From NCBI GenBank assembly GCA_002269645.1, contig NIVC01002524.1, positions 1 to 64,000 on the forward strand: DNA of 64,000 nucleotides, read 5' to 3'. The notes under the pieces were generated by a model. It was given only the letters and a program-made list of their open reading frames with translations, ran no database searches and had not been told where the DNA came from. Of the stretch, positions 7,837-63,882 are shown piece after piece. A program made the position numbers and the translations under genes. Source of the DNA: Macrostomum lignano (Eukaryota). Position 1 is the stretch's first letter. Every line of letters begins with the position of its first letter.

Positions 7837-7867
<31 letters not shown>

Positions 7868-10472: not shown

Positions 10473-11004
10473 GGATCCGCCCCTATCTGCACACTATCCG
10501 CCCCTATCTGCACACGATCCGCCCCTATCTGCACACGATCCGCCCCTATCTGCACACGATCCGCCCCTATCTGCACACGATCCGGCACTATCTGCACACG
10601 ATCCGCCCCTATCTGCACACTATCCGCCCCTATCTGCACACGATCCGCCCCTATCTGCACACGATCCGGCACTATCTGCACACGATCCGCCCCTATCTGC
10701 ACACGATCCGCCCCTATCTGCACACGATCCGGCACTATCTGCACACGATCCGCCCCTATCTGCACACGATCCGCCCCTATCTGCACACGATCAGCCCCTA
10801 TCTGCACACGATCCGCCCCTATCTGCACACTATCCGCCCCTATCTGCACACGATCCGCCCCTATCTGCACACTATCCGCCCCTATTTGCACACGATCCGC
10901 CCCTATTTGCACACTATCCGCCCCGATCTGCACTCTATCCGCCCCTATCTTTACACGATCCGCCCCGATTTGCACACGATCCGCCCCTATCTGCACACTA
11001 TCCG
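10473..11004 (+). repeat. 21-bp minisatellite (GATCCGCCCCTATCTGCACAC), ~25 copies
   Basis: Direct tandem copies; explains ORFs 10210..11070, 10412..11164 and 10466..11023. Confidence 0.97.
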
Positions 11005-30880: not shown

Positions 30881-31677
30881 GATCTCAAAGCTCTGTCGAC
30901 GATCTCAAAACTCTATGGAAGATCTCAAAGCTCTGTCGAAGATCTCAAAGCTCTGTCGAAGATCTCAAAGCTCTGTCGAAGATCTCAAAGCTCTGTCGAA
31001 GATCTCAAAGCTCTGTCGAAGATCTCAAAGCTCTGTCGAAGATCTCAAAGCTCTGTCGAAGATCTCAAAGCTCTGTCGAAGATCTCAAAGCTCTGTCGAA
31101 GATCTCAAAGCTCTGTCGAAGATCTCAAAGCTCTGTCGAAGATCTCAAAGCTCTGTCGAAGATCTCAAAGCTCTGTCGAAGATCTCAAAGCTCTGTCGAA
31201 GATCTCAAAGCTCTGTCGAAGATCTCAAAGCTCTGTCGAAGATCTCAAAGCTCTGTCGAAGATCTCAAAGCTCTGTCGAAGATCTCAAAGCTCTGTCGAA
31301 GATCTCAAAGCTCTGTCGAAGATCTCAAAGCTCTGTCGAAGATCTCAAAGCTCTGTCGAAGATCTCAAAGCTCTGTCGAAGATCTCAAAGCTCTGTCGAA
31401 GATCTCAAAGCTCTGTCGAAGATCTCAAAGCTCTGTCGAAGATCTCAAAGCTCTGTCGAAGATCTCAAAGCTCTGTCGAAGATCTCAAAGCTCTGTCGAA
31501 GATCTCAAAGCTCTGTCGAAGATCTCAAAGCTCTGTCGAAGATCTCAAAGCTCTGTCGAAGATCTCAAAGCTCTGTCGAAGATCTCAAAGCTCTGTCGAA
31601 GATCTCAAAGCTCTGTCGAAGATCTCAAAGCTCTGTCGAAGATCTCAAAGCTCTGTCGAAGATCTCAAAGCTCTGTC
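30881..31677 (+). repeat. 20-bp minisatellite (GATCTCAAAGCTCTGTCGAA), ~40 almost identical copies
   Basis: Essentially invariant units; degenerate precursors at 30820-30920. Explains ORFs 30707..31684 and 30798..31892. Confidence 0.98.
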
Positions 31678-33242
31678 TTCTTAGATCTAAAAAACTGCTC
31701 TATCAAAGGTCTCATTGCTCTGCGAAGTACCTTGATGATCCCAGCCAACAGCAATTGAATAGAAGATCAATGAGCTTCACTAAAAGCCAGATAGATACAA
31801 TGCTGGTACATGCACTCAATCATAAGCGGTGTCGAATGAAGGCGCGGCACATGATCAAGTATGTCGTTGCAGCGCATCGCCCTTGCTATTAGCTATTAGG
31901 TAAAGCCGTTGCATGGCGTTGAGAAGCCAGCACTGAGGCCGGGGCAACATCCAGTTTGGTAACTTTTTGCTTGCTGCCGATGCCTTAATAGCGGAAGCTT
32001 GGCAGCGTATGTTTGCTCGCATCGCTGCCGCGCACACGGATGCGGCTAAACACACATCAACACACTACTGGCGCATCAACGTGTTTGTGCTGATGCATTC
32101 CATTCATTGACGGCTAGTTTCATTATATGGGGAGGGGGGAGTGGCTGATGCGGCAGGACTTTTCGCAAATTCATTGGCATTAGCCCACAGGCCACATAGC
32201 AGCCGGAACTTGAAACACGGGCGCGTCGTGTCGCCCGTCCTTTGAAATTTGTGGGGCATTTAGCTTTGAGGGAGACTGGAATGCCCCCTCCCCGCAAGCA
32301 ATCGCTTATTGTATGTGTGCACACGGAGAGAGAAGGGCTGTCCTTACCGCGAAATCGCTAATGGGATATGGTGATGAGGCTGACAGGTAAATACTACACT
32401 GTACTTGCTGACATTCAGCTGCCAACTCTCTCTCCACCTGTCTCTACTATCGTTTTACTGTCCTTGTATTCGCAGTTGCTAATGCAAATTGCTATAGGTC
32501 GGAAATCGCACAGTCCCAGGGCAACAATCTATTTTGATTTCCAATCAGTTTTTTCGTTTGTTTTCTTTTTAATAGAAAAATCGACTAAATTTAAGTCCCT
32601 CTTCAGTGTCTGAGGCTGTAGACGGGTGCCCCTCCTGCCTCTCCTGCCCAGCTGGTAATTTGCCGGCACAATGCTACTCGCTGCTGGAAACCTCTGCCTC
32701 GCTATTGGTTGGCTGTCCTAGTGGAATTGTTGTGGGGAGAAGTATTTGGGGGGAGGGAGGGAGGAGTGACAGTAAAGGCTGTAGCAAAAGAATCCAAGCT
32801 TATGCGGCTCGCAGTCTGACTGAACAAATTTGCCTTGTTGTGTAACTTCCAATCCATTGGCCCTTGTTCTGATTTATTCCCTATTTAATTCATTGGACTT
32901 ACCAATGAAATTTGACGCATCGAGCGAGCCAGTGAAATTTCAAACGGTCTGGTCAATCATTGTTTGATTAATTGGCAACATCAATTTTAACAGGTTCAGA
33001 GACTATTTTACCTACTCCTGCATCCTGCCCGAGTTTGGGGTAAGACAGCTGGATAATGCGAGGCAATTAATCAAAATATTGATGTAAATTGCATAATTAC
33101 GAATATTGATCTTTGCAAATATTCGTTAATCTGCTGGTTCTTGTTGCCGTGTTTCTCAGGGGTGAATTGGTCATTGGTTCACTATCTACTCAAATTAGTG
33201 TCTATTTGAGCGTATCTTTTATCTCAATGTCCACTCCATTCT

Positions 33243-34672: not shown

Positions 34673-36011
34673 CTGCACTGTCAATAACGTTCAAATCTGT
34701 AGTTCCATTTATTATATTGCCTCAGTCGATGGCCACTTGTGTGACTACACTTTGCAGGCTTTTAGGAGTATATTTTAATCCTCGCGAGTTTCCAATTGAC
34801 TTGAGCTGCTTTGGAGTCCCTATCACAATCTCGCGCTCCCTGATACTCCGTGTGTGAGCACACAATGTTGCTGCTGGCCTCGTGTGTTTTCTTCCCGACC
34901 AAGGGCGGGAACCAATTGGTATTAGTTAATAAATCATACTTAAAGCACTTTATATGCAGGTTTTGCGTCTGCGAAATGAGCAAAGCGACGTCTGCGCAGC
35001 AGAACCTCGACCTAAATGTAATAATATGACTTGCAGCATACCGAATCCTTATTCTGTCTGTCGCAAGCTGCTCTCTGCTCGCTACCCCCGCCATAGACTG
35101 AAGCAAAAATCAATGAGTCCAATCCCGTCCCTGCTCAATTCTGAATCCGCAGCCGGAAGTGAACCATTCCCCGTCGCAGAAAGTCTGTGTATGTACCTAA
35201 GACCCCTGTCTGTCTGGCTAAAGCGAGTATTGGAGCTTGAGGTTATCACATTAAACTGCTACCAGTTGGGGCCGGGGTCGGCGCTGCTGACTGCATCTGC
35301 GGCTGCTGCAGCATGGCCTAGTCCGAACTATATTGCATCGGATTGGATAAGATAAAAGCAAAGTTTTCTCCCCTACCCCCCTGCCCGGTCCTGTTGCGCC
35401 CCTGTTAACAGGAGCTTCCAACTCCATATACTTAGTTCCTTCGCAGTGCGCGGCACAGTTTAATCTTTCGGCCTGGTAGATCGGGGGGGGGCTTGAAGGG
35501 GGAGGCGGTGGGCAGAAAAGAAAGAAAAATGTAAGCATGATCGCCCGGGCTGGCATGGATCGTGTGTCGGCAACATCGCTTTTCAGTGTGTAGTGTATGC
35601 TGTGTGTGTGTGTGTGCACAGCGAGCAAACAGCAAAGTGGCCGGAACACACCCTATTTTGGCTGCCGCTCTTCCATCCTGCCATCCTCGATTTCTCGAAT
35701 GCCAGCCTCCGCTATAGAGATCCAAAATCCGGCGCCTCATCATCGCCCATTCTTTGCAACTGGCAGAGCCCCATGGCATACCATGTCTTCTAAACGTCCT
35801 AAACAGTCGTATCGGTAGCTAAAATATGCACGTTTGGCGAAAGATAGTTTACAACTCTTTTTAATTAAGTAGTTCAACTCGATTGGTTTTTCTGTTGCCA
35901 GAGTGAAAGCTGGCGATTTCGATGGTAAGATGAGTGATGTCCTGAGTTGTGTTAATACTATTGTGTACTTTCATTTAAAAGTTTTGTATGAAACTTGATA
36001 AAAATGCTTCA

Positions 36012-36772
36012 TTGATCAAACTGCAACTACTGTTTATCAATCTCCAGCTACTGTTTATCAAACTCCAACTACTGTTTATCAAACTCCAACTACTGTTTAT
36101 CAAACTCCAACTACTGTTTATTAAACTCCAACTACTGTTTATCAAACTCCAACTACTGTTTATCAAACTCCAACTACTGTTTATTAAACTCCAACTACTG
36201 TTTATCAAACTCCAGCTAATGTTTATCAAACTCCAGCTACTGTTTATCAAACTCCAGCTACTGTTTATCAAACTCCAACTACTGTTTATCAAACTCCAAC
36301 TACTGTTTATTAAACTCCAGCTACTGTTTATCAAACTCCAGCTACTGTTTATCAAACTCCAGCTACTGTTTATCAATCTCCAACTACTGTGTATCAAACT
36401 CCAGCTACTGTTTATCAAACTCCAACTACTGTGTATCAAACTCCAGCTACTGTTTATCAAACTCCAGCTACTGTTTATCAAACTCCAGCTACTGTTTATC
36501 AAACTCCAGCTACTGTTTATCAAACTCCAGCTACTGTTTATCAAACTCCAGCTACTGTTTATCAAACTCCAGCTACTGTTTATCAAACTCCAACTACTGT
36601 TTATCAAACTCCAGCTACTGTTTATCAAACTCCAGCTACTGCTTATCAAGCTCCAGCTACTGTTTATCAAACTCCAGCTACTGTTTATCAAACTCCAGCT
36701 ACTGTTTATCAAACTCCAGCTACTGTTTATCAAACTCCAGCTACTGTTTATCAATCTCCAGCTACTGTTTAT
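36012..36772 (+). repeat. 21-bp minisatellite (CTACTGTTTATCAAACTCCAR), ~36 copies
   Basis: Direct tandem copies; explains ORFs 35975..37021. Confidence 0.97.
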
Positions 36773-37989
36773 ATAACAGACTGGCGCCACTTCTGTACAC
36801 CTGTTTTTCTCATAGCCGAGGCTATATTATTCTTAGGCTTCGTGCCACTCTTTCTGATCCAGAATGCAACGGTCGCAAAATGCGCAGCTGTTTTTGACGC
36901 AATATTTACCTACCGACGCTGGATATTCTATCCAAAACCACTTGTTTATATTGTCCCCGTTTGGCAGGTTCTTCCTCGCTTTTTTTGTCTCTTACCTTCT
37001 CTCAGTTTTACTCGACATTGAAGCCGAGCAACAAACGGCCTGTCTTGGTCTGCCTCAGCCAAGCTACCGCTTAAACAGTAGGAATTCGATCCCCCGAGCT
37101 CTTGATGGTGGGTGCCGCGTAATTTGCCACTTGGCTAAGCCCTTCTCTCTGTGCTGCTTAACGCTTGCTAGCACGTATTGGCTCCTCCCCATTTTTTCTC
37201 GGTTGTTGCTCAAGTTCCCCACAATTTGGCCTTGGCTCAGCTCCCCCCCGCCGACTCAGCCGGCATTGTGGCATTGTTGTTGGTGTCTGTGTCTCACCGT
37301 ACCACTGTGCCGCACTACCCGCGCTCTGTTTGACACGGGCTCCATGCTGAGCCCTCGCGTTTTAAAAACCGCACCAGGGCCAGTAGACTGGGAAAGAATA
37401 GGGACCGGGCTGTGAATAAAAGGCGCTCAACACCCCTCCTTTTTCATCCTATTTCATTTCTCGCCTCCGCCTCAAGCCAATTCCGAGCAGCTCACCGATC
37501 CATTGAACCGCCTCTGACTGACAGCTGAGACTACAAAAGAGAATCTCTCTAGCTCTGTGCTCTTGCGTTTTCGCCTCAGCAGCTAGGCAGCTAGTAGTGT
37601 CGGGGGAACCAACTGAAACAATGAATAGCCCGGATAGTCGGTATAGCGCCTAGGGACGCCCAGGGAAGGGGGTGGAGAATTTTGGGAATAAGAATAAAAA
37701 ACAACACAGCTAGTCAGCTGGAATTTCAGCACTGGATCTCCGGCTAGGCTGGGTCTGTTCGAAGCTTTAAACTAAAAAAATGGGCCACTTTTTATTTAAA
37801 AAAATAGCCGGGTGCCAAACTCTTGCATCGTTAGCCACCCGTTCGCGTTACGAAATGGCCACGGAATTGCCTCTGTTCAGTTTACCTGCCTGTTTTCCTA
37901 TTCCCAAGGATTACTTGCAGAGGCTTACAGATCTTAATACTCTTTAGATGCAGTCATTGTATAGTCATAGTCATGCCACTCGTATGGTC

Positions 37990-43152: not shown

Positions 43153-43424
43153 ACTGCTTTGTGTTATCCAACTGACTGTTTCATAAAACAACCCGGGAGT
43201 AGGATATTTCTTCTACATGCTGGCTGTTGACTCAAAAACAGCTTCTGTTAACAACTGTGTTTCGAATATAGGAACGGGTATAGTCGGAGGAGGGCGTCTG
43301 CTTAGCAAGCACCGAAGCTAGTGCTTGCGTGGACCGTGGCTTAAAATGCTCATTGTTCAGCACTTCTCTCTATTGAATGGTCATCTCTCCTAATGATCTG
43401 GGCTTCTGTCTCTGTTTTTGCATT

Positions 43425-44057
43425 TTCTCCCCCCTCTTGTCTCAGTCTCACCCTCCTCTTGTCTTGGCCTCCCCCCTCTTGTCTCAGTCTCCTCCCTTTC
43501 TTGTCTAGTCTACTCCCCCTCTTGTCTCAATCTCCTCCCCCTCTTGTCTCAGTCTCCTCCCCCTCTTGTCTAGTCTCCTCCCCCTCTTGTCTCAGTCTCC
43601 TCCCCCTCTTGTCTCAGTCTCCTCCCCCTCTTGTCTCAGTCTCCTCCCCCTCTTGTCTAGTCTCCTCCCCCTCTTGTCTCAGTCTCCTCCCCCTCTTGTC
43701 TCAGTCTCCTCCCCCTCTTGTCTCAGTCTCCTCCCCCTCCTGTCTCAGTCTCCTCCCCCTCTTGTCTCAGTCTCCCTTTCTTGTCTAGTCTCCTCCCCCT
43801 CTTGTCTCAGTCTCCTCACTTTCTTGTCTCAGTCTCCTCCCTTTCTTGTCTCAGTCTCCTCCCCCTCTTGTCTCAGTCTCTTCACTTTCTTGTCTCAGTC
43901 TCCTCCCTTTCTTGTCTAGTCTCCTCCCCCTCTTGTCTCAGTCTCCTCCCTTTCTTGTCTCAGTCTCCTCCCCCTCTTGTCTCAGTCTCCTCACTTTCTT
44001 GTCTCAGTCTCCTCCCTTTCTTGTCTCAGTCTCCTCCCCCTCCTGTCTCAGTCTCCT
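43425..44057 (+). repeat. 21-bp pyrimidine-rich minisatellite (CCCCTCTTGTCTCAGTCTCCT)
   Basis: Direct tandem copies just upstream of the putative TCF promoter. Confidence 0.96.
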
Positions 44058-44219
44058 TCTCCGCTTTCCCTCGTGTTTATCTCCTCCCTCCCAATTTCTC
44101 GTGTAATTTGAGCAAATAAAAACATTCTCCACATTTTTACTCCGATAACCCCAGCCATACTACTTGCAGCACTACTAATAAACTATTACTTTACGTGTTT
44201 CCTCTTTCTGTTCAGAGTG

Positions 44220-44579: not shown

Positions 44580-46211
44580 GTAACTTTCTGTGGCTATGTT
44601 CATAATAGAGAAAATATGCTTGCTTTATTAATACTGGCAGCCCAGGTGTTACGCTAGCTTGGAGAGTGTTGAGAAAGATGAAAAATTAATTAACGAGGTA
44701 ACGAACCCTTCCGAGCTTGGAATAATTCGAGTTGGAAATCTGTTTCGCACTGAGCAGCTTTAGTCTTGAGTCACTATGCGCCAGAACCGCTGCCATCAAT
44801 TATGATCTGCCTATGCGCGTCAGGCGGTTAACAAATCTGTTTGCAGTGCTGTCCGGGTGTTCTCTCTAGTATAGTCCAGCATGTCAGTCACACCGGTTCA
44901 GTTTACTGTGAATGTGTGTATAATGTGTGTGTTTGTGTGTGTATTCTGCCGCCCCTAAGCTTACTGCTCCCGTGTCCCGATGTTCTCGAGGCTCAAATTG
45001 TCTGAAGTGGCGGCACCGCAGGAAATTCGGAATTCTCTCTCCGCCTTCTCACTTAGGGCTCATGACCACTCTCCAGCGTCTCCGCTTCTTCAACTACTCT
45101 CTTAATTCATCTGATATATCTGCCCCACCCTAGCGCGCTACCTGCGGCTTTGTTGTGCCAACCGGCCCAGCTTGTTGTCTTAATTTTCTTCTGCCTGAAA
45201 ATTTCTCTGCCTACTCTCACAGTCTATTCTCTGCTTGGCCCTGGTTCCCACTGGTCTATTATTAAATTAATCTTTGTCTTTTGTCTCGCTCCGCTAACTA
45301 GCAGCCAAAGTTCTATTTTATTGGTCTGCTTTGGTATGTGTGCGCGCGTGTGAATTGTCTCGGCCCCTACCCTGCATTTCTCTCTGCCCTCCCTCTCAAT
45401 CGGTGTGTTTATCTGTTCTCTCTTTGACAGTTCTCGCTCATCGGTTATCGCCGCCTATCCAGGTTGTCAAAGCCTGTCTCGCCATTGCCAGGTTCCATCT
45501 CTTCTCATTTTCATCGCACACGATCTTGGGACAGAGTGACCAGCAACATTATTCATATAGAAAGTCGCCGCTCAGACAGGAAGTGAACCTTGACTTGCAA
45601 TTTAGACTTTTTAATATATAAGTACCTTAATTAAATACGCATTGCCTGTCTCCATCGTTTGACCGACCTGTCTCTCATTTTTATTGAGTTTCTTGCTTGG
45701 TCCTCCCGGTAACCTGTCGGCAAGGTAAGCTGTAATCCGCGGCTTTTCAGCTTTTGCTACAAAAATCCCCAGTTTTCATTGTCCCTTAGACAAAATCGAA
45801 GGCGAGCGGGAGCGGCTTCCCTCTTCTAGCGCCGCCAATCAATCTTGTTAATTGATTCTTTGCATTGTCGCCTTTTGTTTCTTTTGGCTTTTACCTATTC
45901 ATCACCTTCTATTCATTGCATCCGATCCCTTCAAAATTGTCATTAAGTTATCTTCTTCTCTACGAAAACTCTTTTTGTTCAGAGATTTTTTAGTTTATTG
46001 GCTGCAATTGTTGTCTTCATCCAATATCTGTTTCGGGCCCGTTTCATTTCATGCCATCTGCCCTACTCTCGTTCGCCTTGCAGAAGCAGTGACTCCTGTT
46101 TAAAAGCATGCCAGCTGCGCTGTCCTGCGCGTGAGCCTCGCAACCAGCCTCTCTCCAAGTACAGCGCGCGCTTATTCAACAACTGCTACTCGGCCACTCA
46201 AGTCGGATTTG

Positions 46212-46932
46212 ATGGCCGCCGCATCAATGAGCGCCAGTGTTGGCCGGCCGAACGACGGCGTCTCCAAGCGGGAATCTGCGTCTTCTTCTGCAGCTGCAGC
46301 AGCCTCGCTTGTCCCCGGCGAGGATCTGGCCGCCTCGGACGAAGTGAAGAACTACAACCAGGAAGACGAGGAGGACAGCATAGCGGCGCCGCCGTTCTCA
46401 GCCGGCGAGAATCTGCGCCAGGACAAAAGCGAACTAGTTGAGGAAGGCGAGAAAGCGCTTTGGAGGCCGTACGCTTCCACTGGAGGCGGCGGGAGTCATG
46501 CTGGCTCGGCAACTGCAAGCGCCGGCGACCGGGCTCACAATGCCCAGCCTCTTCATCTGCCTCATCCGCCTGTGCCGCCCAGGCTTTCTCAGCATTCACT
46601 ATTTGGCGCGCCAAACAATGCTGCGGCCGCGGCGGCGGCTGCTGCAGCAGCGGCGGCAGCAGCGGCAGCCGCGTCGCCTCTATACGGCCACGGTAGCCCT
46701 GTGCCGCTGCACCAGTTCCTCAGCCAGTGCGCGGCGCTGTCCTTTCATCCGCCATTCCATCATCCCGGTTGGGTGGCCGCGGCCGCCGCCTCCGGTGTTC
46801 GCGGCGGCAGTGGCGGCGGCGACGGGTCTCGCCTCCCGCCTCATTTCTCAGCGGCCGCGTCCTCAGCGGCCTACTTGGAGGGTCTGCGCTCTCCGACTGC
46901 GGCTGCTTCCGCTGGCATCTGCGGTAGTGGAG
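46212..46932 (+). CDS. TCF: TCF/LEF (pangolin) first coding exon with beta-catenin-binding domain
   Basis: EDLAASDEVKNYNQEDEED...ENLRQDKSELVEEGE matches the CTNNB1-binding motif (DDLGANDE..FKDEGE...L...KSSLV.E.E). In-frame TAA at 46101 precedes ATG 46212. Donor GTGAGA at 46933, phase 1. Confidence 0.9.
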
Positions 46933-46962
46933 GTGAGAACGGTTGGGGAAGTCGCTCTTGAG

Positions 46963-48250: not shown

Positions 48251-49214
48251 ACTTTTGTATGGGTTTAGTTATTTAATTTAATATGAACTGAAAAATTTTC
48301 ACTGAAATTATCAGTTTTATTACTACTATTGAGTGAGGTGACACACTATCAGAGTTAGCCAATTTGTAGCAATATCTTTGGCATCCAAGTTGCCGATCAA
48401 TTTCTAGTCCACTTGCCTGCTCCAAGTCTGGACTCTCACTATTCGCTGCAATTCACTCACTCTCTCTCTCTCTCTCTCTCTCCAACTCTTTGTTTCTCTT
48501 TTTCGCCTGCGCGCTGCCCCGTGACCGATGCTGGCGGGGCGCCTTCCACTAGCCCGCCTGTCAATCAAGCCTCGAATATGGCCCACTTATGCCCTTGTCT
48601 TTTCGCCTCCCTACCTTCCAGCTCTGTCTGACTCCCTTTCACCACCTAGGCGCTGACACTCCCGACTAAGCTACTCAAATTCTCTCATCTCCTCATCCCC
48701 GCGCAGCGCCAATGCTCTCCAGGAAGCCGCCACCCAGCTGGCCCGGCCTCCGCTCCGCCCCTACTTGTCGTTGACGTCTGCCTTGGCGCCCGCCTCCTCC
48801 TCCCAGCCTCCAGGCACTTTGCCCGGCCCTCTATTGCCATTCGTCACCATTGCTTTCAGCTTTTTTGCTCTCTTGAAATTGATGCTCTCTCTACCGTCTC
48901 TCTGCCTGCGCGCGTGTTTTTTATTCACCAGCGCAGCCACCTCCCGATTGTCTTCTTGCCTTGCCACTCTTCTATTTCTTCAGCTCAAGCGTTCGCTGTG
49001 CGGTGGGGCGCAGCCTTGGTTCTCTGGTCGCTTCGTTGGAGCGAAAATTAAAGTGAAGCTGCTGCTGTTAGGGGGCGGGGGCGAGCGGTTTAGTGGCCCG
49101 GGCTTTCTGCTTCTGTTGCTGCTAACCGTTGCTGTGTTTCTTTTTCTTCTTTCACTTTTTTCTTGATGCCTCCTTTTTTAGGCTGTGCGTTCTTGTATTG
49201 CATCTTGATATTCT

Positions 49215-49628
<414 letters not shown>

Positions 49629-50364
49629 TCTAATCTACTCTATCTAATATATCAGTCAAACCCACACCTGATGCTTCGTAATCGTAACGTTTATCCCTGA
49701 ACTCGACGAACCGAAACGCCCCCCCCCCCTGGCGCCCCAGTCAGCGAGTTCCTGCGTGCGTGCCCGCAGCTCTCGCCCCGCTCCCCACCCGCCATTTTGA
49801 TCGCGTGAATGGCTGAAATCCGAATAGCGAATCTCAGTCAGATGCCGAGGCTTCCGCTGGCCCTTTTCCTAATCTCTATTCTCTCCTCCCCTTTGTTGCT
49901 GCGTTGAACTTCCTCTTCTGCCTTTTTGTTTGTGTTGTTTTTGTTGCCTAATTAATTTTGTCCCGGGGTTCGAATCTCCCGCTCTCCCGAGGCGTCAATG
50001 TCGTGACCCGGGCCGCACTCCTCTTTATTCTGTGCACCTCTGTTCATGATGATTTCGCTTCCGTCAGCTCTGTTCACAATGGTTCCTGCCCCGGTCTTAA
50101 TTGAATTTAATTTGCTGGCTTTGGCGCCCTCACGGCACGCCATCTTGATTTGTTTCTCCTCTATTCTCTGCTTCTTCTGACAAAGGACTGCATCATTTTG
50201 TTGTCAAACTTTTTTTTCCGGCAAAAAAGTTAGATTTTGGGCAGGAAATTTCCTAGTAATGCTGATGACTTATAACCGATTCTTTCAGATTATTGAGATC
50301 TTTCGTAAGCTTGTCCAGTGCAATCGATTTTTTTCTTTTTTAGGGTGCGAAATTTATGCTTTTT

Positions 50365-50805: not shown

Positions 50806-52376
50806 AGTCCGTATTCTCTCCCTTATCTGCAGTTTTCAATCTCCTGCCCTTATCTCATAGGAGTTGAATTTGTAGCAAAAGTTTTGGAAACTGCATGCAA
50901 AACCAAACTGACTGCAGTTTACTTAACACTTCGCCACTCTCTAGCGCAAGTGAAAACCATACAGCACTGTATTCACTGTATCCATGCGCAGGCGTTTTCC
51001 CACCAGCGGCACTGCGAGCTGTCTGTCTGCCGCCCTCGCGGCTCAGCTTATATGGCCTTCTATTTTTCTCCATCCGTTCTAAGGCGCGCTTGAGAGAGGA
51101 ATAATCAGAGATGAAGCCCCCCCCCTCTCTGCGGAGCTCGGAATCGACGAAGTGGTTGGAAAGCAATAACGCGGCTACAGTTGTTGTTGCAATAAATTTC
51201 AACACTGGTCCTGCCTCAGTGTAGGTGGTGTGGGGAGCAATAATCAAGCCGATACGCCAGCAAAGGCGCAACTAGGATATTCGGACGATTTTCGAGCTAA
51301 ATCGATTTTTTGAAAGCGTCCCTGCTGCAATGCTGCGGTCAAGTAGGGGCTGGAGAGACCGGCTTGTATGCTAGATGAAGCCTGCTCACTGCTCACCTAG
51401 GCGCAGCTCCTCCCGGCCTGTCTGTTATACAGAAGAGAGGAAAAAATCCCAAACATTACGGCTTGCTCCCGTTTTTGATTGACAGGCGCATAAAAAGGGA
51501 AACTATGCAGAGAACTCGGTTGATATAATGACGGCAGGTGAGATGTGTTGAGGCTGGTGCACGGTGATTCCAATGATAGAAAAGCTATGGGTGAGTCTAT
51601 ATTGGCTGCTGTGTTGAAGACACGAGAGCCACTTTTCTGGCCTCTTCCAAAGTTTGTCAAGTCGAGGCATGTTCTGCGAGCGCGCGGTTCCACTCGTTCT
51701 TTCGTGTCTCTGGGAAGCTGGGGAAAAGAAAACTGTTGGGGTGGGTGGGGGTTATGGGAGAGTTGGATGCGCGACCGGAAGGCCCCTGGCAACAACAGAA
51801 GGAAGTGAGAGGAGCCATTGCAAAGTTAAGAGCAAATGAAAGAGTGAGACAGAGAATTGAAGAAGGATGCAAGATGACGAATGCTGTGGCCACAGCTTCT
51901 TTTAGTAGATTTTCCCTTTCAATATAGATTCTACAATTCTACTCCCAGTTTGACTGACAAGTCGGGAACTGAGACGCGGCGCTTGCGGGAGAATTGCGTG
52001 ACTTTCGCCGCCTCCCTCCCTGCCTCTACGTCACTCTCAAGCCCCCCCCCCCACTCAGTTCCTCTATTGTTCCTACTCGCTATCCAAACCTATTTCTTTT
52101 CCTTTGTGTTGGATTCGGGCTACAAAGAGTGTGCTAATGCGCTAATTATAGCCGCGCTAAAATGTGCCAGCGCCAAACTAGGAGGGGGGGCATCATCATT
52201 AGGGCACACATACTCGAATCTCACACTGCATTTGTGGATTATTCTGGCTTATTCTATATATGGAAGTGTTCCCTCCTATCTGTCTCTTGCAGTTCAGGGC
52301 TGCCTCTATCAGGGTCAGGGGATTATTCTGACTTATTCTATATATGGAAGTGTTCCCTCCTATCTGTCTCTTGCAG

Positions 52377-53536
52377 TTCAGGGCCGCCTCTATCAGGGTC
52401 AGCCGTCCAGCCAGCGCCAGCAGCACCAGCGCCAGCACCAGCACCAGCATCAGAGCCTGTCCCGTTCGGTGCTAATTGGCAGCACGACAGCCGAGCTGCG
52501 TTTGAAAGCTGGTCAAACAATGGCGCCAGCTCAGCAGCACCAGCACCGGCAGCAGCAGCAGCAGAACCACGTGAAGAAGCCGCTCAATGCGTTCATGATC
52601 TTCATGAAGGAGCAGCGGCCCAAGGTGGTGTCGGAGTGCACGCTGAAAGAGTCGGCCGCCATCAACCAGATCCTTGGCCGGCGCTGGCACTCGCTCAGCC
52701 GTGAGGAGCAGGCCCGCTACTACGAGCTGGCCCGCCAGGAGAAGGAGCAGCACGCCAAGCTCTACCCAAACTGGTCGGCCCGCGACAACTACGGCGGCAT
52801 TGCGCGTAAACGCAAAAAACAGAAGCTGAGATTTTCTCACTCTGTTGGCTTGAATGCGACCGGTTTTGGCGGCGGCGGCGGAGTTGGGGGCGACGGCAAT
52901 CTGACTAGCGTTACTATGGCAACCTGCGGAATGAGCGCCGCCAATGCCCGGTGTAGCAGTCTTGGCAGCATTAGTGGCGGCGTTGGCCTCCCGACCTCTT
53001 CTGTTGCTGGCGCCGTCTCTACTCCGTCGTCGGCTGTTGCCGCTGCTGCCGCCCACGCGGCCGCCGCTGCCGCAGCTGCAGCCGCCGCGGCGGCCGCCTC
53101 CGCCGCCAAGAAATGTCGCGCAGTGTTCGGCCTGGAACGCCAGGATCTCTGGTGCAAGCCGTGCAAGCGAAAGAAGAAATGCGTCAAATTTGCCTCCGCC
53201 GATTGTTGCGAAAGCCAGTCGGTGCCGTCAACGCGGCACTCGCTGCTGCCCTCGGCGTCGCTGCAGTTGCCGCCCCCGCTGCCGCCGCCGATGAAGCGCT
53301 CTCGGCCGTCGACTCCGTGCAATGCCCAGAACTTGGCGACTGCCAGCGCCTGCTCTACTAATAGTAGCAGCAACAATCATAATTGTAACAACTTTTTCTG
53401 CTCGCCGAACGCCAGCAGCGGCGACGCCGGCGGCGGTTCAGGCGGCGACGACGAGGACGAGGACGACGATGACGATGACTGCGACGAAGAGGACGCCACC
53501 CAAGTGGCGTCACATAAGCAAACGCACCCAAGCTAG
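52377..53536 (+). CDS. TCF: TCF/LEF (pangolin) exon with HMG box, basic tail and C-clamp; current stop lies within the inserted LINE
   Basis: [76 protein letters not shown] is the TCF HMG box; RKRKKQK basic tail; [26 protein letters not shown]-clamp. Acceptor ctcttgcag at 52376 (alternative at 52292), phase 1. Confidence 0.95.
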
Positions 53537-54614
53537 GATCACAGAGACCTGTGTTGAGAGCACGATGCTCTTCAATGCAGGCGCCCGGCCCTTCCACAAG
53601 TCGGAAATTAAGCGGATGCAGCAGGCAATGGACCGTCGTTATCGGTACGTGTGGAGCAGCAAGACCGAACCACCGCTAAAAGAAATGGAGAGAAAAAAAG
53701 TGAACATGTGGGACGTGCGGAACGAACTGCGGGTCCGAAGCATCGGCGCCAAAGTCGAATCGGCCCACTGGCGCAGGCTAGGCCACGTACTCAGACTCCC
53801 GGATACCAGCACCGTCAAAAGATGTGTCCTCGGCTGGAGCAAGAAGCTGACTACCATCAAGAAAGCGCGGAAGAGAAGGCAGACCATCATCTCGGTATGG
53901 AGAAAGCTACTGCGCACGGCAGAAATCGATGAGCTGGAGGTCGAAAGGCTGGTGACCGAGAGAGAGGCTTGGAGAAAGAAGTTACGCATCAGGGAAAGAG
54001 CGCTGGAGGAGAGCGAGAGGAAGAAAGGAAAGAAAGCAGAGACGACTGAGGAAGAAACAGCACAGGAAAGAGAAGCCGGAGAAGTGGAATCGGAGCTGAC
54101 CGGGTACAGGTGCAATTACGAGAACTGCGGGAAGGTGTGCGCGTCGAGAGCCGGGTTAGCCGTACACCAACGGAGGATACACCATCAATTTACGAAGACA
54201 CCGCTGCCGTGCCTAAAGTGCAACGCTACCTTCTTCACGGAGGCGACAAGAAAAAACCACCAGAAGAGGTGCGGAGGAGAGGAGCGATCGGCGAAAGAAG
54301 TCCACTGCGGAGAGTGCAACAAGTGGATAAGCAAGTCCAACCACGCGCGGCATAGGAAACGGTGCAAGGAGAACGGAAGGAAACCAGAGGCGGGCGCGAC
54401 ACCGGACGAGAGGGCAGAAGAAGCAGCAGTACCAACGGGGAGAGGCCAGCAGACGACGGGGATTACGGCGCGGATCTACAAGAGCGCCAGAGCTCCGTGC
54501 CCGGACTGCGGGAGGATGCTGGCCCGCACGAACATGGCCAGACATCGAAAGACCTGCCAGTGAGTCGGCGGCAGAGCGTCCACGCCGCGAGGCGAGAAAA
54601 GGACTGAAGAAGAA
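53498..54614 (+). mobile_element. 5'-truncated RTE-type non-LTR retrotransposon with intact 3' ORF end (RT thumb region plus four zinc fingers)
   Basis: Open frame 53499-54563 (354 aa): [39 protein letters not shown] (RTE-like), one C2H2 and three C2HC fingers. Short 3' UTR, (GAA)n tail, 12-bp TSD GAAGAGGACGCC at 53486-53497 and 54615-54626. Confidence 0.9.
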
Positions 54615-54626
54615 GAAGAGGACGCC

Positions 54627-54800
54627 GAGGGCGAGGGCGAGGGCGAAATCAAAGGCGAGAGCGTCGGGTGCGATGTAAAAATGTTGAAAACCTCGCCAGC
54701 CTCCGCCGTTCACTCGGATGGCGGCTATTCGCCATCACTGCCGCCTCCTCCGCCGACGCACTGTCGGGCACTGGAGGCGCACGGCACGCCATCCTGCTGA
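54627..54800 (+). pseudogene. TCF: Displaced native TCF C-terminus (EGEGEGEIKGESVGCDVKMLKTSPASAVHSDGGYSPSLPPPPPTHCRALEAHGTPSC*)
   Basis: Removing the LINE and one TSD copy restores the TCF frame: ...DEEDA continues in frame for 57 codons to TGA at 54798-54800. Confidence 0.85.
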
Positions 54801-55375
54801 TAAAGCGTTGATTGCGCCATCAGTTCAGGTCGCCCCCCCCCCCCCGAACTGCTGCTTTGCGGATCAACTTTCATTTGTAACTCTTTGAATTATGGCTCTG
54901 TCCGATTCCCAGTGCTCGCTTGGCTTTGTGAAGGCAGAAATTGTTTTAGCATCTCTTTCGTCCGATTGAAGCCTCCTGTCTCCTCTGTTCTTGACCCCCT
55001 CCCCCACCTCACCTCGATCTTGTTTGTTGGCTCTGCTCTTCGCTTTCAATGCGCTATCTGATGAAGAAATGCCCCCCTTACCCTGAGATAATGAGTTGTT
55101 TTTTAAAGAATTTTAATCATTTATCAGCAATTAACAATAATAGCCTTTGCACCAATTGCGAATTACTTCATACTGTCTTTGTGCTCGATCTGTTTTTTTT
55201 ATTTGTACACACGTGAAATATTGATGTTTTCAAATTGCCATACTGTTTGATATTCATTTTCATGTTTACCTTAAATTGCATTGCATCTTTGCGTGCTTCT
55301 GCACTTGCTCTGTCTAACTTCTTCTATTGCCTGTCATCTTCTCTACGAGAATGGTTGCCTGAAATCTTATATTTT

Positions 55376-55927
55376 CTCAGTTGCTGGGCCAGCCTCCCAG
55401 ATCCTCAGTCGCTGGGCCAGCCTCCCAGATCCTCAGTTGCTGGGCCAGCCTCCCAGATCCTCAGTCGCTGGGCCAGCCTCCCAGATCCTCAGTTTCTGGG
55501 CCAGCCTCCCAGATCCTCAGTTGCTAGGCCAGCCTCCCAGATCCTCAGTTGCTGGGCCAGCCTCCCAGATCCTCAGTTGCTGGGCCAGCCTCCCAGATCC
55601 TCAGTTGCTGGGCCAGCCTCCCAGATCCTCAGTTGCTGGGCCAGCCTCCCAGATCCTCAGTTGCTGGGCCAGCCTCCCAGATCCTCAGTCGCTGGGCCAG
55701 CCTCCCAGATCCTCAGTTGCTGGGCCAGCCTCCCAGATCCTCAGTTGCTAGGCCAGCCTCCCAGATCCTCAGTTGCTGGGCCAGCCTCCCAGATCCTGTT
55801 GCTGGGCCAGCCTCCCAGATCCTCAGTTGCTAGGCCAGCCTCCCAGATCCTCAGTTGCTGAGCCAGCCTCCCAGATCCTCAGTTGCTGAGCCAGCCTCCC
55901 AGATCCTCAGTTGCTGGGCCAGCCTCC
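55376..55927 (+). repeat. 28-bp minisatellite (CAGTTGCTGGGCCAGCCTCCCAGATCCT)
   Basis: Direct tandem copies; explains ORFs 55235..56127. Confidence 0.97.
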
Positions 55928-56649
55928 CAGATCCTCAGTTGCTGGGCCACCAGCAGCAGCCCAGATGCAGGGCAGAGTGCAGTCACGGTGAGGAGATGCA
56001 GGGCAATCATCAGTCTGTGTTGCTTCTCTCTATAGCTATCATAAAACTTTGCGACGGGCACACGCGGCTTACACAGTCCGCAATTGTGTTGTGCGAGCTT
56101 ATTATGTACTTACAAAATTTATTATAATTGAGAATTATTTGTTTGATGCGCGCACTTGTCTACTAGAAGTAACTTCGTACGGGCAAGCTCTTTTTAAAGA
56201 GAAAAAAACACTAAATACACGCTCTCTTAGGAATAAGGGGCCTCAAGACGGTCCTGTTGTCTTAACTTTTCGGTTAGTTTTGTATATTTACTACAGTAGT
56301 TCCACGCGAGGGCCATAGGCCTGAAGCTATGCTGCTGGCTGTCCTGTATACAAATGTTCGAGGTATGCTTTGATCTGTTAATAACTCCAATCAGTACGAG
56401 TTACACAATTCAACCGCTGATTTCTATAGCCAGTTTGTCGAATAAGACTCATAAAGATACGCTTTGAGTGTACATAGAGACTAGCTAACTCATTTCTAAC
56501 ACCCTGAGCCCTGATCTTGCTGCTACAACTAGTCCTCGATAGGTACTCGGTTGCTCATTAATTAGGTTGCAAATAATCTTGATAGGTCCTCCGCGACTGC
56601 TTGGCTGGTCCATCTTTGGTCCTTGGGTTCTTAAACTTATTATGTTCCT

Positions 56650-57475
56650 TGACTGGTCTCCAACTGGTCCCCGACTGGTCCTTAACTGGTCCTTAATTGG
56701 TCCCCAGCTAATCCCCAACTGGTCCCCGACTGGTCCTTAATTGATCCCTAGCTAATCCCCAACTGGTCCCCAACTGGTCCTTAATTGGTCCCCAGCTAAT
56801 CCCCAACTGGTCCCCGACTGGTCCTTAATTGGTCGCCAGCTAATCCCCAACTGGTCCTTGACTGGTCCTTACCTGGTCCTTACCTGGTCCTTAATTGATC
56901 CCCAGCTAATCCCCAACTGGTCCCCTAACTGGTCCTTAATTGGTCCCCAGCTAATCCCCAACTGGTCCCCGAATGGTCCTTAATTGGTCCCCAGCTAATC
57001 CCCAACTGGTCCTCGACTGGTCCTTAATTGGTCCCCAGCTAATCCCCAACTGGTCCCCTAACTGGTCCTTAATTGGTCCCCAGCTAATCCCCAACTGGTC
57101 CTTGACTGGTCCTTACCTGGTCCCTACCTGGTCCTTAATTGATCCCCAGCTAATCCCCAACTGGTCCCCTAACTGGTCCTTAATTGGTCCCCAGCTAATC
57201 CCCAACTGGTCCCCGACTGGTCCTTAATTGGTCCCCAGCTAATCCCCAACTGGTCCCCGACTGGTCCTTAATTGGTCGCCAGCTAATCCCCAACTGGTCC
57301 CCGACTGGTCCTTAATTGGTCCCTAGCTAATCCCCAACTGGTCCCCGACTGGTCCTTAATTGGTCGCCAGCTAATCCCCAACTGGTCCCCGACTGGTCCT
57401 TACCTGGTCCTTAATTGGTCCTTACTTAGTCCCCTAACTGGTCCCCTACTGGTCCTTAACTGGTCCCCGACTGGT
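56650..57475 (+). repeat. ~44-bp minisatellite of ~11-bp subunits (AACTGGTCCCC GACTGGTCCTT AATTGGTCCCC AGCTAATCCCC)
   Basis: Direct tandem copies with higher-order subunit structure. Confidence 0.96.
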
Positions 57476-58194
57476 CTTCAAGTAGTGCGCCCCTACTGGT
57501 CTTTCATTCGCTCCTGTATGTATCGGCCATCGTTATTTAAAATCGACCACCGCTCAAAATGAGCGAGAACTTGACCTTGACCGAAGCATTCACCGTATCG
57601 TATAATATACAGAGTATTTTAGCCTTTAAGCAGAACTTCTAGAACTAATCAATTAGTGCTATGCAATAAATTTGAAAGTCATAATCATTTTTGCCGCTAA
57701 ATCTTTCAAGCTATAGTTTACGTAACTTTGTTATATAATGTACCAAATTTATTGCCTTGCGCACAATTTTACTATGATTTGTTAAATTTAACTGGACTCG
57801 CGGTCTTCAAGTGCCTAATAACACATTGCAATTGCAGAGCAGAACCGAATTTCTGTTTCCAATTCTTTTTTTACATTATTATATCGATGCCAAACAGGTT
57901 TTATTAATAAGCTACTTCATTTTTACTTGCAATTTCTTAACTAGCAATTGAGTTTTACAGACTGTCAAATTGCAGCATAAATTTGTATATCGATAATAAC
58001 TTACAATTAATAAATATTTCCATTTGATTTTAGCCTAACTAATTTTGTCTTTTTCTTTAAATTTATTTTATTTCCCAATCAGATTGTAAAGTAAAATTAG
58101 GATACTTTCAGGCTTTCGGGACTACTGAAAGTAGTCAGTTAGTAGTAGCTACTACTGAAATATTGAAGCTGCAGCCCACAGTACTTGAGCTGCA

Positions 58195-59047
58195 CCACAC
58201 AGTACTTGATCTATACCCCACAGTACTTGATCTATACCCCACATTACTTGATCTATACCCCACATTACTTGATCTATACCCCACATTACTTGATCTATAC
58301 CCCACATTACTTGATCTATACCCCACAGTACTTGATCTATACCCCACAGTACTTGATCTATACCCCACAGTACTTGATCTATACCCCACAGTACTTGATC
58401 TATACCCCACAGTACTTGATCTATACCCCACAGTACTTGATCTATACCACACAGTACTTGATCTATACCCCACAGTACTTGATCTATACCCCACAGTACT
58501 TGATCTATACCCCACAGTACTTGATCTATACCCCACATTACTTGATCTATACCCCACATTACTTGATCTATACCCCACAGTACTTGATCTATACCCCACA
58601 TTACTTGATCTATACCCCACAGTACTTGATCTATACCCCACATTACTTGATCTATACCACACAGTACTTGATCTATACCCCACATTACTTGATCTATACC
58701 CCACAGTACTTGATCTATACCCCACATTACTTGATCTATACCCCACATTACTTGATCTATACCCCACATTACTTGATCTATACCCCACATTACTTGATCT
58801 ATACCCCACAGTACTTGATCTATACCCCACAGTACTTGATCTATACCCCACAGTACTTGATCTATACCCCACAGTACTTGATCTATACCCCACAGTACTT
58901 GATCTATACCCCACAGTACTTGATCTATACCACACAGTACTTGATCTATACCCCACAGTACTTGATCTATACCCCACAGTACTTGATCTATACCCCACAG
59001 TACTTGATCTATACCCCACAGTACTTGATCTATACCCCACAGTACTC
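58195..59047 (+). repeat. 21-bp minisatellite (CACAKTACTTGATCTATACCC), ~40 copies
   Basis: Direct tandem copies; explains ORFs 58135..59222. Confidence 0.98.
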
Positions 59048-59145
59048 AATCACTTCCGCAGACAGGCCGTCACTACTCCTGAGCGCCCACTACGCAGTGA
59101 CAGATTGCAGATTAGCAAATCAAATTAGTATCGCTGAGGGCTATC

Positions 59146-59242
59146 ATGACAGACAGCGGTGCCGGCAGCTTTTTCAGCTCAGTACCGCAGAGTTCTTCAT
59201 CTGCTGCTCGATATGGTTTTGATGATATACTTACTGAGGACG
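59146..59242 (+). CDS. Candidate first coding exon A of the SVOP-like transporter (MTDSGAGSFFSSVPQSSSSAARYGFDDILTED)
   Basis: ATG at 59146; consensus donor GTGAGT at 59243; phase 1 joins exon 63686 in frame (G+AT = Asp). Acceptor-like ttccgcag at 59061. Confidence 0.5.
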
Positions 59243-61020: not shown

Positions 61021-61654
61021 AGAAGCAGAAACCAGGCAATAAAACTATAAACAAGATTGGAAATTTGGGCCTATAAACAGGATTCGCGTTTGGCTGACTG
61101 GCTGCTTGGCACAGTACGAGCGTATTAAGCTCATCAAAGCGCTCTGGGGGCAGCTAGATAAAGCATACAAATCCGTTCGGTTAGTTCCGCCAGCCAGAAC
61201 TGTAGCTCTCAGGCAACAGCTGCACATATTTTTGCTTCCGTTTGACAGAAGGGAGAAAGAAAGCACTCAGGGAGAATAGCTCTCACCCGCGCTGTGCGAC
61301 CCGCCTTCTTATTGTGTAGTACTCGTAGGTAAAAATCATTTTTACTAGTATGCCGATTCGGCATAGAAGCAGTGTTGTTTGCCAAAACTAAAATGTACTT
61401 TGCTTATGCGGAGTAGTCACTCTCCAGTTTTTTGCCAATCTCTTCTTTTTTGCAGCAAGAGCAGAGGTCTCGGCTCTAACTAATTGATTTATACGCTCGT
61501 AATGACTTTTGCTGTTTGGAAAATTATCAATTTGAGGAAGGCTGTGCTTTGCTTATTTCGGTGTTTTTTGTTTACTCAGAATTGTTGTTACTCTATGGGC
61601 CTGTTTATGGTTGCTGTGCCGATTTCCTTAACTGGCTCTCTGTGCTCACCTGTC

Positions 61655-62272
61655 TCAGTCTCTCCCCTGTCTCTCTACCTGTCTCTCTAACTGTCTCCCT
61701 ACCTGTCTCTCCCCTGTCTCTCTTCCTGTCTCTCTACCTGTCTCTTTACCAGTCTCTCCCCTGTCTCTCTTCCTGTCTCTCCCCTGTCTCCCTACCTGTC
61801 TCTCTACCAGTCTCTCTACCTATCTCCCTACCTGTCTCTACCTGTCTCTCTACCTGTCTCCCTACCTGTCTCTCTACCTGTCTCCCTACCTGTCTCTCTA
61901 CCTGTCTCTCTACCTGTCTCCCTACCTGTCTCTACCTGTCTCTCTACCTATCTCCCTACCTGTCTCTACCTGTCTCTCTACCTGTCTCCCTACCTGTCTC
62001 TCTACCTGTCTCCCTACCTGTCTCTCTACCTGTCTCTCTACCTGTCTCCCTACCTGTCTCTCTACCTGTCTCCCTACCTGTCTCTCTACCTGTCTCTCTA
62101 TCTGTCTCTCTTCCTGTCTCCCTACCTGTCTCTCTACCTGTCTCTCTACCTGTCTCTCTTCCTGTCTCCCTACCTGTCTCCCTACCTGTCTCTCTACCTG
62201 TCTCCCTACCTGTCTCTCTACCTGTCTCTCTATCTGTCTCTCTTCCTGTCTCCCGTCTTTCCCAGATCCATC
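61655..62272 (+). repeat. 12-bp pyrimidine-rich minisatellite (CCTGTCTCYCTA)
   Basis: Direct tandem copies; explains ORF 61516..62334. Confidence 0.96.
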
Positions 62273-62559
62273 CAGCTGTCTCAGGATCTGCTACTACTGG
62301 TAGCTTTTTAAAACTAAAACTGCATAGACTCTAGATTACTCCAGATTAAAATTGGTCAACCGGATTGTTTATAGCGAAATTCTCTTCGATTTTCCAATGG
62401 CAACGATTGGCTCCAATCCTATTCTATTTATAGTTTCTGTAGCTACTAGATATAGCATGCACAATAGCAGATGGGCAACGACCGTTGCTCTCTATTAACT
62501 TTTGCCTGAAGTCAAAATTCCTGCAATTAATACTCAATCTAAACTGATCGGCAGCCGCC

Positions 62560-62647: not shown

Positions 62648-62927
62648 GTAATAATAAATATTGCTAGTTTTTCATAATTATCAAGCTTGTATTTTAAGTC
62701 CGCCAAAGTTTTTATGCAGTAGCCAATTTGTATACTTACTATCAGCTGCTTTATTATGCAGCAATATTCTATTTATTAATTTCAATTCTGTACCAGAGCT
62801 TCTGTGTTCTAGTTATTCCATTTTGAAATTTTATCCAGTGTGCTGGTGTTCAGCTTTTTATTGGCTTGTTTTGCTTACTTGGGAGCTGGTTTTTTATTTC
62901 AAGCAGAAATAATTAATTCCAATTTTG

Positions 62928-63600
62928 CCTGCCCCTCTCAACCCCAACCTGCCCCTCTGAACCCCACCCTGCCCCTCTCAACCCCACCCTGCCCCTCTCA
63001 ACCCACCCTGCCCCTCTCAACCCCACCCTGCCCCTCTCAACCCCACCCTGCCCCTCTCAACCCCACCCTGCCCTCTCAACCCCAACCTGCCCCTCTCAAC
63101 CCCACCCTGCCCTCTCAACCCCACCCTGCCCCTCTCAACCCCACCCTGCCCCTCTCAACCCCAACCTGCCCCTCTGAACCCCAACCTGCCCCTCTGAACC
63201 CCACCCTGCCCCTCTCAACCCCACCCTGCCCCTCTCAACCCCACCCTGCCCCTCTCAACCCCAACCTGCCCCTCTGAACCCCACCCTGCCCCTCTGAACC
63301 CCACCCTGCCCCTCTCAACCCCACCCTGCCCCTCTCAACCCCAACCTGCCCCTCTGAACCCCAACCTGCCCCTCTGAACCCCACCCTGCCCCTCTGAACC
63401 CCACCCTGCCCCTCTGAACCCCACCCTGCCCCTCTCAACCCCACCCTGCCCCTCTGAACCCCACCCTGCCCCTCTGAACCCCACCCTGCCCCTCTGAACC
63501 CCACCCTGCCCCTCTGAACCCCACCCTGCCCCTCTGAACCCCACCCTGCCCCTCTGAACCCCACCCTGCCCCTCTGAACCCCACCCTGCCCCTCTGGACC
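62928..63600 (+). repeat. 21-bp C-rich minisatellite (CCCCACCCTGCCCCTCTSAAC), ~32 copies
   Basis: Direct tandem copies ending 85 bp before the acceptor at 63685. Confidence 0.98.
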
Positions 63601-63685
63601 CCGCATGCCCCAGGCCTGTTTCACACCATCTTAATCCGGAGACAGTTTCTGACACTCCCGACTGATTTCCGTCGCCATCCCGCAG

Positions 63686-63882
63686 ATGCCCGCGGCCTGC
63701 TGAGCGATGCCGCCGATCGAGACATCGGCAGCGGAGCCGACAGTAAGGCGACGGCCTCGGCTAGCTCAGATTTTGATGGCATCGGCGACGGCGAGGAGAC
63801 CTACACGGTGGAGCATGCAGTTGAGAAGCTGGGATTTGGTCGGTTCCAGCTACGGATTCTGTTCATTTGCGGCATCATGACG
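63686..63882 (+). CDS. SVOP: SVOP/SV2-related MFS transporter exon (start of TM1); gene continues beyond window
   Basis: EETYTVEHAVEKLGFGRFQLRILFICGIMT resembles SVOP [26 protein letters not shown]. Acceptor atcccgcag at 63685; donor GTGAGA at 63883. Confidence 0.75.

Follow-up and report, generated by a model that had tools for sequence, protein, structure and literature searches.

The DNA studied here is a stretch of 64,000 nucleotides from the flatworm Macrostomum lignano (assembly GCA_002269645.1, contig NIVC01002524.1, positions 1 to 64,000 of the forward strand; hereafter the window), in which the last coding exon of a predicted TCF/pangolin gene is interrupted by a long interspersed nuclear element (LINE). 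All of the features that make up this locus are read on the plus strand. The first predicted coding exon (46212..46932), found by a scan of open reading frames (ORFs) and splice sites, starts at the ATG at 46212 and ends at GAG/GTGAGA (46932/46933, the slash marking the boundary), the best donor in the scan and the one chosen. The last coding exon opens at the acceptor ttgcag/TT (52376/52377), and its 5' part (52377..53497) carries the HMG box (52571-52777) and the C-clamp (53114-53182) before ending in an acidic tract. The LINE insert of 1,117 bp occupies 53498..54614 and lies between two copies of a target sequence. It is followed by the displaced native C-terminal tail of the gene (54627..54803), which consists of 57 codons (EGEGEGEIKGE...GTPSC) and then TGA TAA (54798-54803), and which would be 3' untranslated region (UTR) in the filled allele. 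With two coding exons the predicted products are 626 aa long for the filled and 671 aa for the empty allele, and this donor and acceptor reproduce the lengths given in an earlier description made from the letters of the DNA alone (the sequence-only reading).

The evidence for an insertion comes mainly from its two ends. The exact 12-bp repeat GAAGAGGACGCC has two copies in the window, at 53486..53497 and 54615..54626, and the match between them extends no further in either direction. The 5' copy adjoins the first LINE-derived base, and a (GAA)3-4 run (54606-54617) adjoins the 3' copy, whose opening bases GAAGA(G) prolong the (GAA)n tail of the element. The true length of the target-site duplication (TSD) may thus be anywhere from 9 to 12 bp. 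The insert is interior to the acidic tract of the exon and in the sense orientation, and when 53498-54626 is removed DEEDA is joined to EGEGEGEIKGE...GTPSC in one frame with the acidic tract continuous. In the filled locus the TCF frame instead runs 12 foreign residues beyond the junction and ends at a LINE-derived TAG (53534..53536), as the translation of the predicted coding sequence confirms. The sequence-only reading had proposed a 12-bp TSD, a (GAA)n tail matching the GAAGAG of the target, a LINE-derived stop at 53534 and a native 57-aa tail that survives in frame; we found each of these in the sequence, the duplication being exact with its ends matching those of the LINE segment, the run from 54606 merging into the 3' copy, and the 57 codons at 54627-54797 rejoining the exon upon excision. 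When the junction regions are shuffled, a shared word of at least 12 bases appears in about 0.3% of trials (p ~0.003). Among real pairs of window regions 1.1 kb apart such a word is shared in 2.8%, in every case due to minisatellites. Because the minisatellites raise the background of shared words to this level, the placement of the repeat is a stronger argument than the word statistics. What is decisive for an insertion is that the repeat sits at the end of the tail and at the start of the LINE homology, and that excision restores the frame.

The insert itself reads as a 5'-truncated copy of an APE-type non-LTR retrotransposon. From its 5' end it holds the region that follows the reverse transcriptase (RT) domain (the thumb), a charged linker, zinc fingers, a stop, a short 3' UTR and the tail. 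Its frame, which the sequence-only reading had called unbroken, does run for 354 codons (1,062 bp) without a stop from 53499 to 54560 and closes with the TGA at 54561-54563. The zinc fingers (54105-54557) are one C2H2 and three C2HC, and the 3' UTR of 42 nt (54564-54605) leads into (GAA)n from 54606. A word-indexed search with the ORF returned a single match, to a protein from a TARA Oceans contig (P0001) that is 41% identical over 98% of the length. A profile search with the post-RT region found 680 relatives among 1.84 billion representatives. ORFs of 1,161-1,323 aa with APE and RT are present among these 680 matches, with RVT_1 immediately upstream of the matched region. No further copy of the insert was found in the window at the DNA or the protein level. 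In the protein collections searched, the TCF and LINE products of the window are themselves absent, and exact look-ups of its 551-aa and 413-aa ORFs matched no entry. The sense orientation, the TSD, the tail and these relatives together bear out the earlier claim that a LINE truly inserted into the last predicted coding exon of the TCF.

The full-length relatives give a picture of what the window copy has lost. In contigs of 4.3-5.2 kb they encode a single ORF (1,293 aa in P0135, 1,323 in P0146, 1,306 in P0285 and 1,422 in P0290) that begins with a 2A-like D(I/V)E(T/S)NPGP peptide, continues with the APE endonuclease and RVT_1 and then with a stretch of about 200 residues in which a GH(V/L)xR...DRxxW segment and a charged linker lie, and finishes with four fingers (one C2H2, three C2HC). 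The 2A-like peptide is DIETNPGP in P0135, P0146 and the element of locus L005, DIESNPGP in P0128, and a degenerate HPNPGP in P0285 and P0123; this region is outside the window copy, where the 5' part is not present. Pfam finds Exo_endo_phos and Exo_endo_phos_2 in P0135, P0146, P0123 and P0157, and the window copy is without an APE domain because it is 5' truncated. The RNase H families of Pfam gave no match in five long relatives. In the relatives the 3' UTR is likewise very short, and the microsatellite that forms the tail is rich in purines, being (CAGAA)6 in the element at L005 (~4700-8590) and (CCAGA)3 in that at L003 (105-4020). The window copy keeps every residue that is invariant in the family and all of the finger Cys and His, and from its sequence it would be the intact 3' quarter of an element that was functional at insertion. 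The named hosts of the relatives are Branchiostoma belcheri and the acoel Convolutriloba macropyga, the others being marine metagenome contigs. The family is almost never present in annotated protein sets.

The insert bears the hallmarks of target-primed reverse transcription, namely a TSD, 5' truncation and a microsatellite tail that shares microhomology with the target. By this mechanism the (GAA)n 3' end of the element RNA would probably have annealed to the nicked GAAGAG target and primed reverse transcription, which would have halted some 1.1 kb into an element whose full length is 4.3-5.2 kb, and second-strand repair would have left the 12-bp TSD. The insert is sense-oriented but in a different frame from the TCF, and because of this 12 codons of LINE would be read before the stop. 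The insertion had been called young, and three features agree with this: the TSD has no mismatch, the frame of 354 codons is unbroken, and no family-conserved residue has been lost. A rough neutral-decay estimate of our own puts its age below about 2% divergence, on the assumption that a stop results from some 4-5% of substitutions and that indels are about 1/10 as frequent as substitutions.

The host gene is a genuine TCF by its predicted sequence, in which an HMG box, a C-clamp and, near the N-terminus, a beta-catenin-binding motif can be recognised. The HMG box matches the Pfam HMG_box model with E=1.7e-21, and a homologue search returned 5,147 TCF-type matches with 79-86% identity over this domain. 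The closest TCF is Macrostomum lignano BOX15_Mlig006942g1 (P0011), whose HMG box is 86% identical, and the DNA of the HMG exon is 84.7% identical to the locus that encodes it (L002). The C-clamp, 3' of the HMG box, has four Cys in the arrangement C-x12-C-x2-C-x6-C and is 84% identical to that of P0011 over 32 aa, and two idiosyncratic residue stretches are common to the two proteins. Upstream, the ORF at 46104-46958 includes DEVKNYNQEDEED...ENLRQDKSELVEEGE, a beta-catenin-binding-like motif at ~46320-46454. Residues 37-81 of the window TCF align with the extreme N-terminus of another TCF (P0047) at 40% identity (E=2e-6) with a 6-residue insertion, the common pattern being EDxxxxDEVKxYxxExEE...ENLxxxKxxLVxExE. 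The Pfam CTNNB1_binding model gave no match to the window TCF at E<=1. The N-terminal motif, the HMG box and the C-clamp all lie upstream of the insert, so that the predicted swap of C-termini leaves the DNA- and beta-catenin-binding domains in place, as had been claimed.

Two further observations concern this gene. An 84-bp tandem duplication (two units at 52236..52402, 97% match by Tandem Repeats Finder, which was applied to 51500-57500 only) straddles the intron/exon boundary, and the acceptor scan shows that it doubles the acceptor of the HMG exon, to 52292/52293 and 52376/52377. An exon starting at 52293 would be in frame, as is one starting at 52377, which allows for an isoform with 28 additional residues. 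Additionally, the linker between the HMG box and the C-clamp (52880-53110) consists of about 100 residues of Gly/Ala-rich low complexity, with a (GCC)n run at 53039-53107. In P0011 the same linker is only about 20 residues long, so that the DNA-binding module seems to have been expanded in this lineage.

The displaced tail needs to be considered separately, as it is the part of the protein that the insertion would remove. GC content is about 65% across it, like that of the exon, and about 42% directly past the native stop. P0011 is annotated with a single exon that runs uninterrupted from the HMG box through the acidic tract into a tail of about 75 aa. Both of these points support the 57 codons as coding exon. 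A BLASTP comparison of the window TCF with P0011 matched at the HMG box and the C-clamp only. A resemblance to the P0011 tail that had been seen by eye (EEDAE, VHSxG and LSPPP) was dropped, being no better than shuffles. Because significant similarity to the P0011 tail is lacking, the standing of these codons as functional coding sequence rests on frame, composition and analogy.

The sequence-only reading had pointed to a psi-K-x-E motif and SP sites in this tail. Both are there: IKGE (54648-54659), which is the sole strict psi-K-x-E in the 671-aa protein, and three S/T-P sites. A psi-K-x-E arises in 4% of shuffles of the native tail. In a wider comparison the motif is found in the post-C-clamp tails of 13 out of 108 C-clamp TCFs, where 2.8 would be expected by shuffling. 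These 13 are all from invertebrates and represent about 7 lineages (Lepidoptera, M. lignano P0011, Physella, Octopus, Bradybaena, P0047 and P0062). The TCFs flagged for it are P0006, P0011, P0031, P0039, P0047, P0062 and P0089. The motif is often beside acidic residues and S-P, likewise in the window tail. It is found in none of the tails of about 85 vertebrate TCF7L2 sequences, and many invertebrate TCFs are also without it. We take the recurrence as a modest comparative lead for SUMO-type modification, and not as evidence that the tail is modified.

Taking this together, we consider it likely, at about 85%, that the last coding exon of a Macrostomum TCF received a non-LTR retrotransposon through target-primed reverse transcription, and that the event was recent and probably neutral or mildly deleterious. 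Three points weigh against this. The gene model was predicted solely from ORFs and the splice-site consensus, the evidence base is one assembled haplotype sequence, and in local alignment against shuffles the native tail is no closer to the P0011 tail than chance would allow (p = 0.29). There is next to no likelihood that low-complexity sequence produced the 12-bp repeat by chance and that the LINE-like ORF is no insertion at all. Both copies do lie in GA-/GAC-rich low-complexity DNA, and minisatellites give the 2.8% background described above, but the shuffled junctions, the coincidence of the repeat with both ends of the LINE homology, the frame restored from DEEDA to EGEGE in a continuous acidic tract, and the 680 LINE relatives of the enclosed ORF all argue against chance. 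A misassembled join between LINE and TCF, or a somatic or single-molecule event, is very improbable. The genome is described in a section of PMC10733133 as extremely repeat-rich and neopolyploid and so hard to assemble, but a chimeric join would not duplicate a 12-bp target at the 3' end of the tail and at the 5' truncation point, nor would it leave a frame that excision perfectly restores.

The remaining alternatives accept the insertion and differ on its effect. The protein might be unchanged, either because the LINE is spliced out as a new intron or because the transcript is spliced or polyadenylated upstream of 53486 and the supposed 57-aa tail lay outside the coding sequence from the start. 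Alternative 3' exons are used by TCF genes in other animals, and the gene model here is a predicted one. However, we looked for a GT...AG pair at the ends of the insert (junctions GCC/ACCCAA and GAAGAA/GAGGAC) and found none, P0011 is annotated as one continuous exon across the acidic tract and tail, and the composition stays GC-rich and coding-like up to the native stop before it drops. We regard an unchanged protein as improbable, if less so than an assembly artefact. If the exon is used as predicted, the 626-aa TCF would be encoded by a filled mRNA whose 3' UTR takes in some 1.1 kb of LINE and, behind it, the former tail. A search of 53400-56000 for canonical poly(A) signals gave none, and early polyadenylation inside the LINE can for this reason be argued neither way. 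The most novel of the alternatives holds that the filled locus is an expressed, functionally distinct TCF variant, specific to a subgenome or population and maybe a homeologue that subfunctionalised once the whole genome had doubled, in which a still-active LINE family removed a SUMO-type psi-K-x-E motif together with the S/T-P sites of the tail and so altered Wnt output. Every recognised domain is kept, and a stop in the last exon should escape nonsense-mediated decay that depends on the exon junction complex. The rarity of IKGE in this protein and in shuffles of its tail, along with the excess of such motifs in invertebrate tails, often with acidic or S-P flanks, speaks for the same possibility. 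Against it, this is motif evidence only, the 13 cases reduce to about 7 lineages with many invertebrate TCFs lacking the motif, the tail has no significant similarity to that of the closest TCF, and the 3' UTR of the filled mRNA would grow by at least 1.2 kb, in a region where the search for a canonical poly(A) signal gave none. Such a variant seems unlikely to us, though a little less so than an unchanged protein. According to passages of PMC5704211 and PMC10733133, M. lignano is a hidden tetraploid with two subgenomes, and redundant copies of the TCF gene are therefore likely. We take the insertion most probably to be a neutral or slightly harmful lesion, carried by one TCF copy or haplotype among several, and do not read it as an isoform under selection.

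In this sense the locus records an ordinary insertional mutation, a young LINE that re-terminates a Macrostomum TCF gene and swaps a 57-residue tail for 12 foreign residues. If the insertion is in the germline and the locus is expressed, it would provide a naturally tail-swapped TCF in a regeneration model capable of transgenesis, and it would mean that this LINE family was active very recently in Macrostomum. An expressed variant would also be a natural experiment on the function of the TCF tail and on the divergence of Wnt effectors after genome duplication. The main practical use of these findings is as a warning for annotation, as automated models at this locus would end in LINE-derived codons or fuse the TCF and LINE ORFs. 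An example is a 413-aa chimeric ORF (53322-54563) that begins at an ATG in an alternative frame of the TCF exon and continues across the junction as far as the zinc fingers of the LINE. A gene caller that works from ORFs would probably list it as a protein; we set it aside as a fusion product, since its ATG is internal and out of frame and nothing else supports it. The LINE family is also a small curiosity for transposon classification.

Other parts of the window can be described more briefly. About 570 bp downstream of the TCF stop lies a 28-bp minisatellite (55376-55949, 20.6 copies, unit CTCAGTTGCTGGGCCAGCCTCCCAGATC). An array in M. lignano contig NIVC01001414 (L002, 9522-9834) matches it at about 90% identity, in the opposite orientation and about 170 bp upstream of the TCF paralogue P0011. 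Together with the likeness of the two HMG exons, this sets the window within Macrostomum, its gene being a TCF paralogue of M. lignano other than P0011 or that of a close congener. The repeat may be a dispersed family or may be linked to TCF loci. On the minus strand a voltage-gated K+ channel gene (2043-2999 and 4341-4724) has its domains in separate exons, Ion_trans (2.2e-29) and the T1/BTB_2 tetramerisation domain (1.5e-11). A six-frame ORF scan gave long stop-free frames across the whole window, for example at 1-2100, 8570-9420, 10450-11020, 30700-31890, 35980-37000 and 43350-44100, and further at 49100-49700, 56650-57480, 58060-59220, 61630-62330 and 62800-63760, which suggests exceptionally dense minisatellite arrays. 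These arrays would swell both chance repeat matches and ORF lists, and they fit the repeat-rich genome of Macrostomum.

The comparison with known LINEs bears on the clade of the insert. The sequence-only reading had labelled it RTE, and this label is not established by what we found. Canonical RTE elements carry one compact ORF of about 1,000 aa, in which APE and RT are the only domains and the C-terminus holds nothing that binds nucleic acid. The relatives, at about 1,290-1,420 aa, have ORFs 30-40% longer than this. They share with RTE-clade LINEs (Bov-B, Rex3, SR2/SR3) the APE-type endonuclease, a single long ORF, frequent 5' truncation, a very short 3' UTR, and a microsatellite-like tail with target microhomology. 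The differences are the N-terminal 2A-like peptide and the addition of about 190 C-terminal residues with one C2H2 and three C2HC fingers. The motifs NYRG, GFRxGRS and R(Q/E)GC in the RT of the relatives are ones that we take to be RTE-like. Aligned to a fragment of the Bov-B ORF, the relatives are colinear from RT through the C-terminal GH..R...DRE.W at 25% identity and 72-100 bits, which is a lead only. Human L1 scores 56-66 bits over the RT core only. Bov-B and L1 score about 100 bits against each other, equal to Bov-B against the LINE family, and since Bov-B is as near to L1 as to this family, the family is perhaps not a close RTE relative. The end pattern of the insert, with a 42-nt 3' UTR, a microsatellite tail and first TSD bases that match the tail repeat, is of RTE type but is not exclusive to RTE. 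An account of RTE-type elements within PMC6007223 does link microsatellite tails to the first bases of the TSD. Membership in RTE, even in a broad sense, is a doubtful if sizeable minority possibility.

A second comparison is with the Ingi/Vingi lineage (L1Tc, ingi, Ingi-1_AC, Vingi-1_BF), with which the family shares a 2A-like peptide and APE in a single ORF as well as C2H2-type fingers. L1Tc has C-terminal C2H2-type fingers. Vingi, reportedly described by Kojima and colleagues in 2011, is said to lack RNase H. Trypanosome Ingi differs in having an RNase H domain and poly(A) tails, neither of which is found in this family, and the absence of RNase H matches from the relatives is compatible with Vingi and not with Ingi proper. 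Ingi, L1Tc and Ingi-1_AC have one ORF with a 2A-like sequence a short way upstream of APE (PMC3708506). In Vingi, for which a single ORF of 993 aa is cited, shorter than the ORFs of the relatives, a 2A-like sequence was not detected (PMC3708506). Vingi-1_BF is known from Branchiostoma (PMC3391268, Table 1), which is also a host of a member of the present family. With 2A, APE, RT and C2H2 fingers but no RNase H, the family resembles this lineage in its set of parts. Pfam returned generic matches only for the insert and its relatives (RVT_1, APE and zf-C2H2), and a PDB search gave L1 ORF2p and R2 at similar weak scores. A profile search with the RT region brought back members of this family and nothing else. 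Judged by its domains, the single-ORF plan of the family appears unusual, and the candidates for its clade are RTE-like, Ingi/Vingi-like or new.

As an event, the insertion is comparable to the exonic LINE insertions that truncate genes in human disease, where L1 copies placed by target-primed reverse transcription are likewise sense-oriented and 5'-truncated, are bounded by a TSD, and provide an element-derived premature stop in a coding exon. The difference is that the window insert lies in the last exon, distal to all recognised domains, which makes tolerance more likely, and that the host is a neopolyploid flatworm, probably with redundant copies. As a protein, the predicted product is best compared with the E-tail isoforms of TCF/LEF (Drosophila pangolin, vertebrate TCF7L2-E). 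These share with it the order of HMG box, basic tail, C-clamp and variable C-terminal tail, while the region between HMG box and C-clamp is widened in the window gene by Gly/Ala-rich low-complexity sequence. In those isoforms the diversity of tails comes from alternative splicing, whereas here the change of tail comes from the insertion of a transposon.

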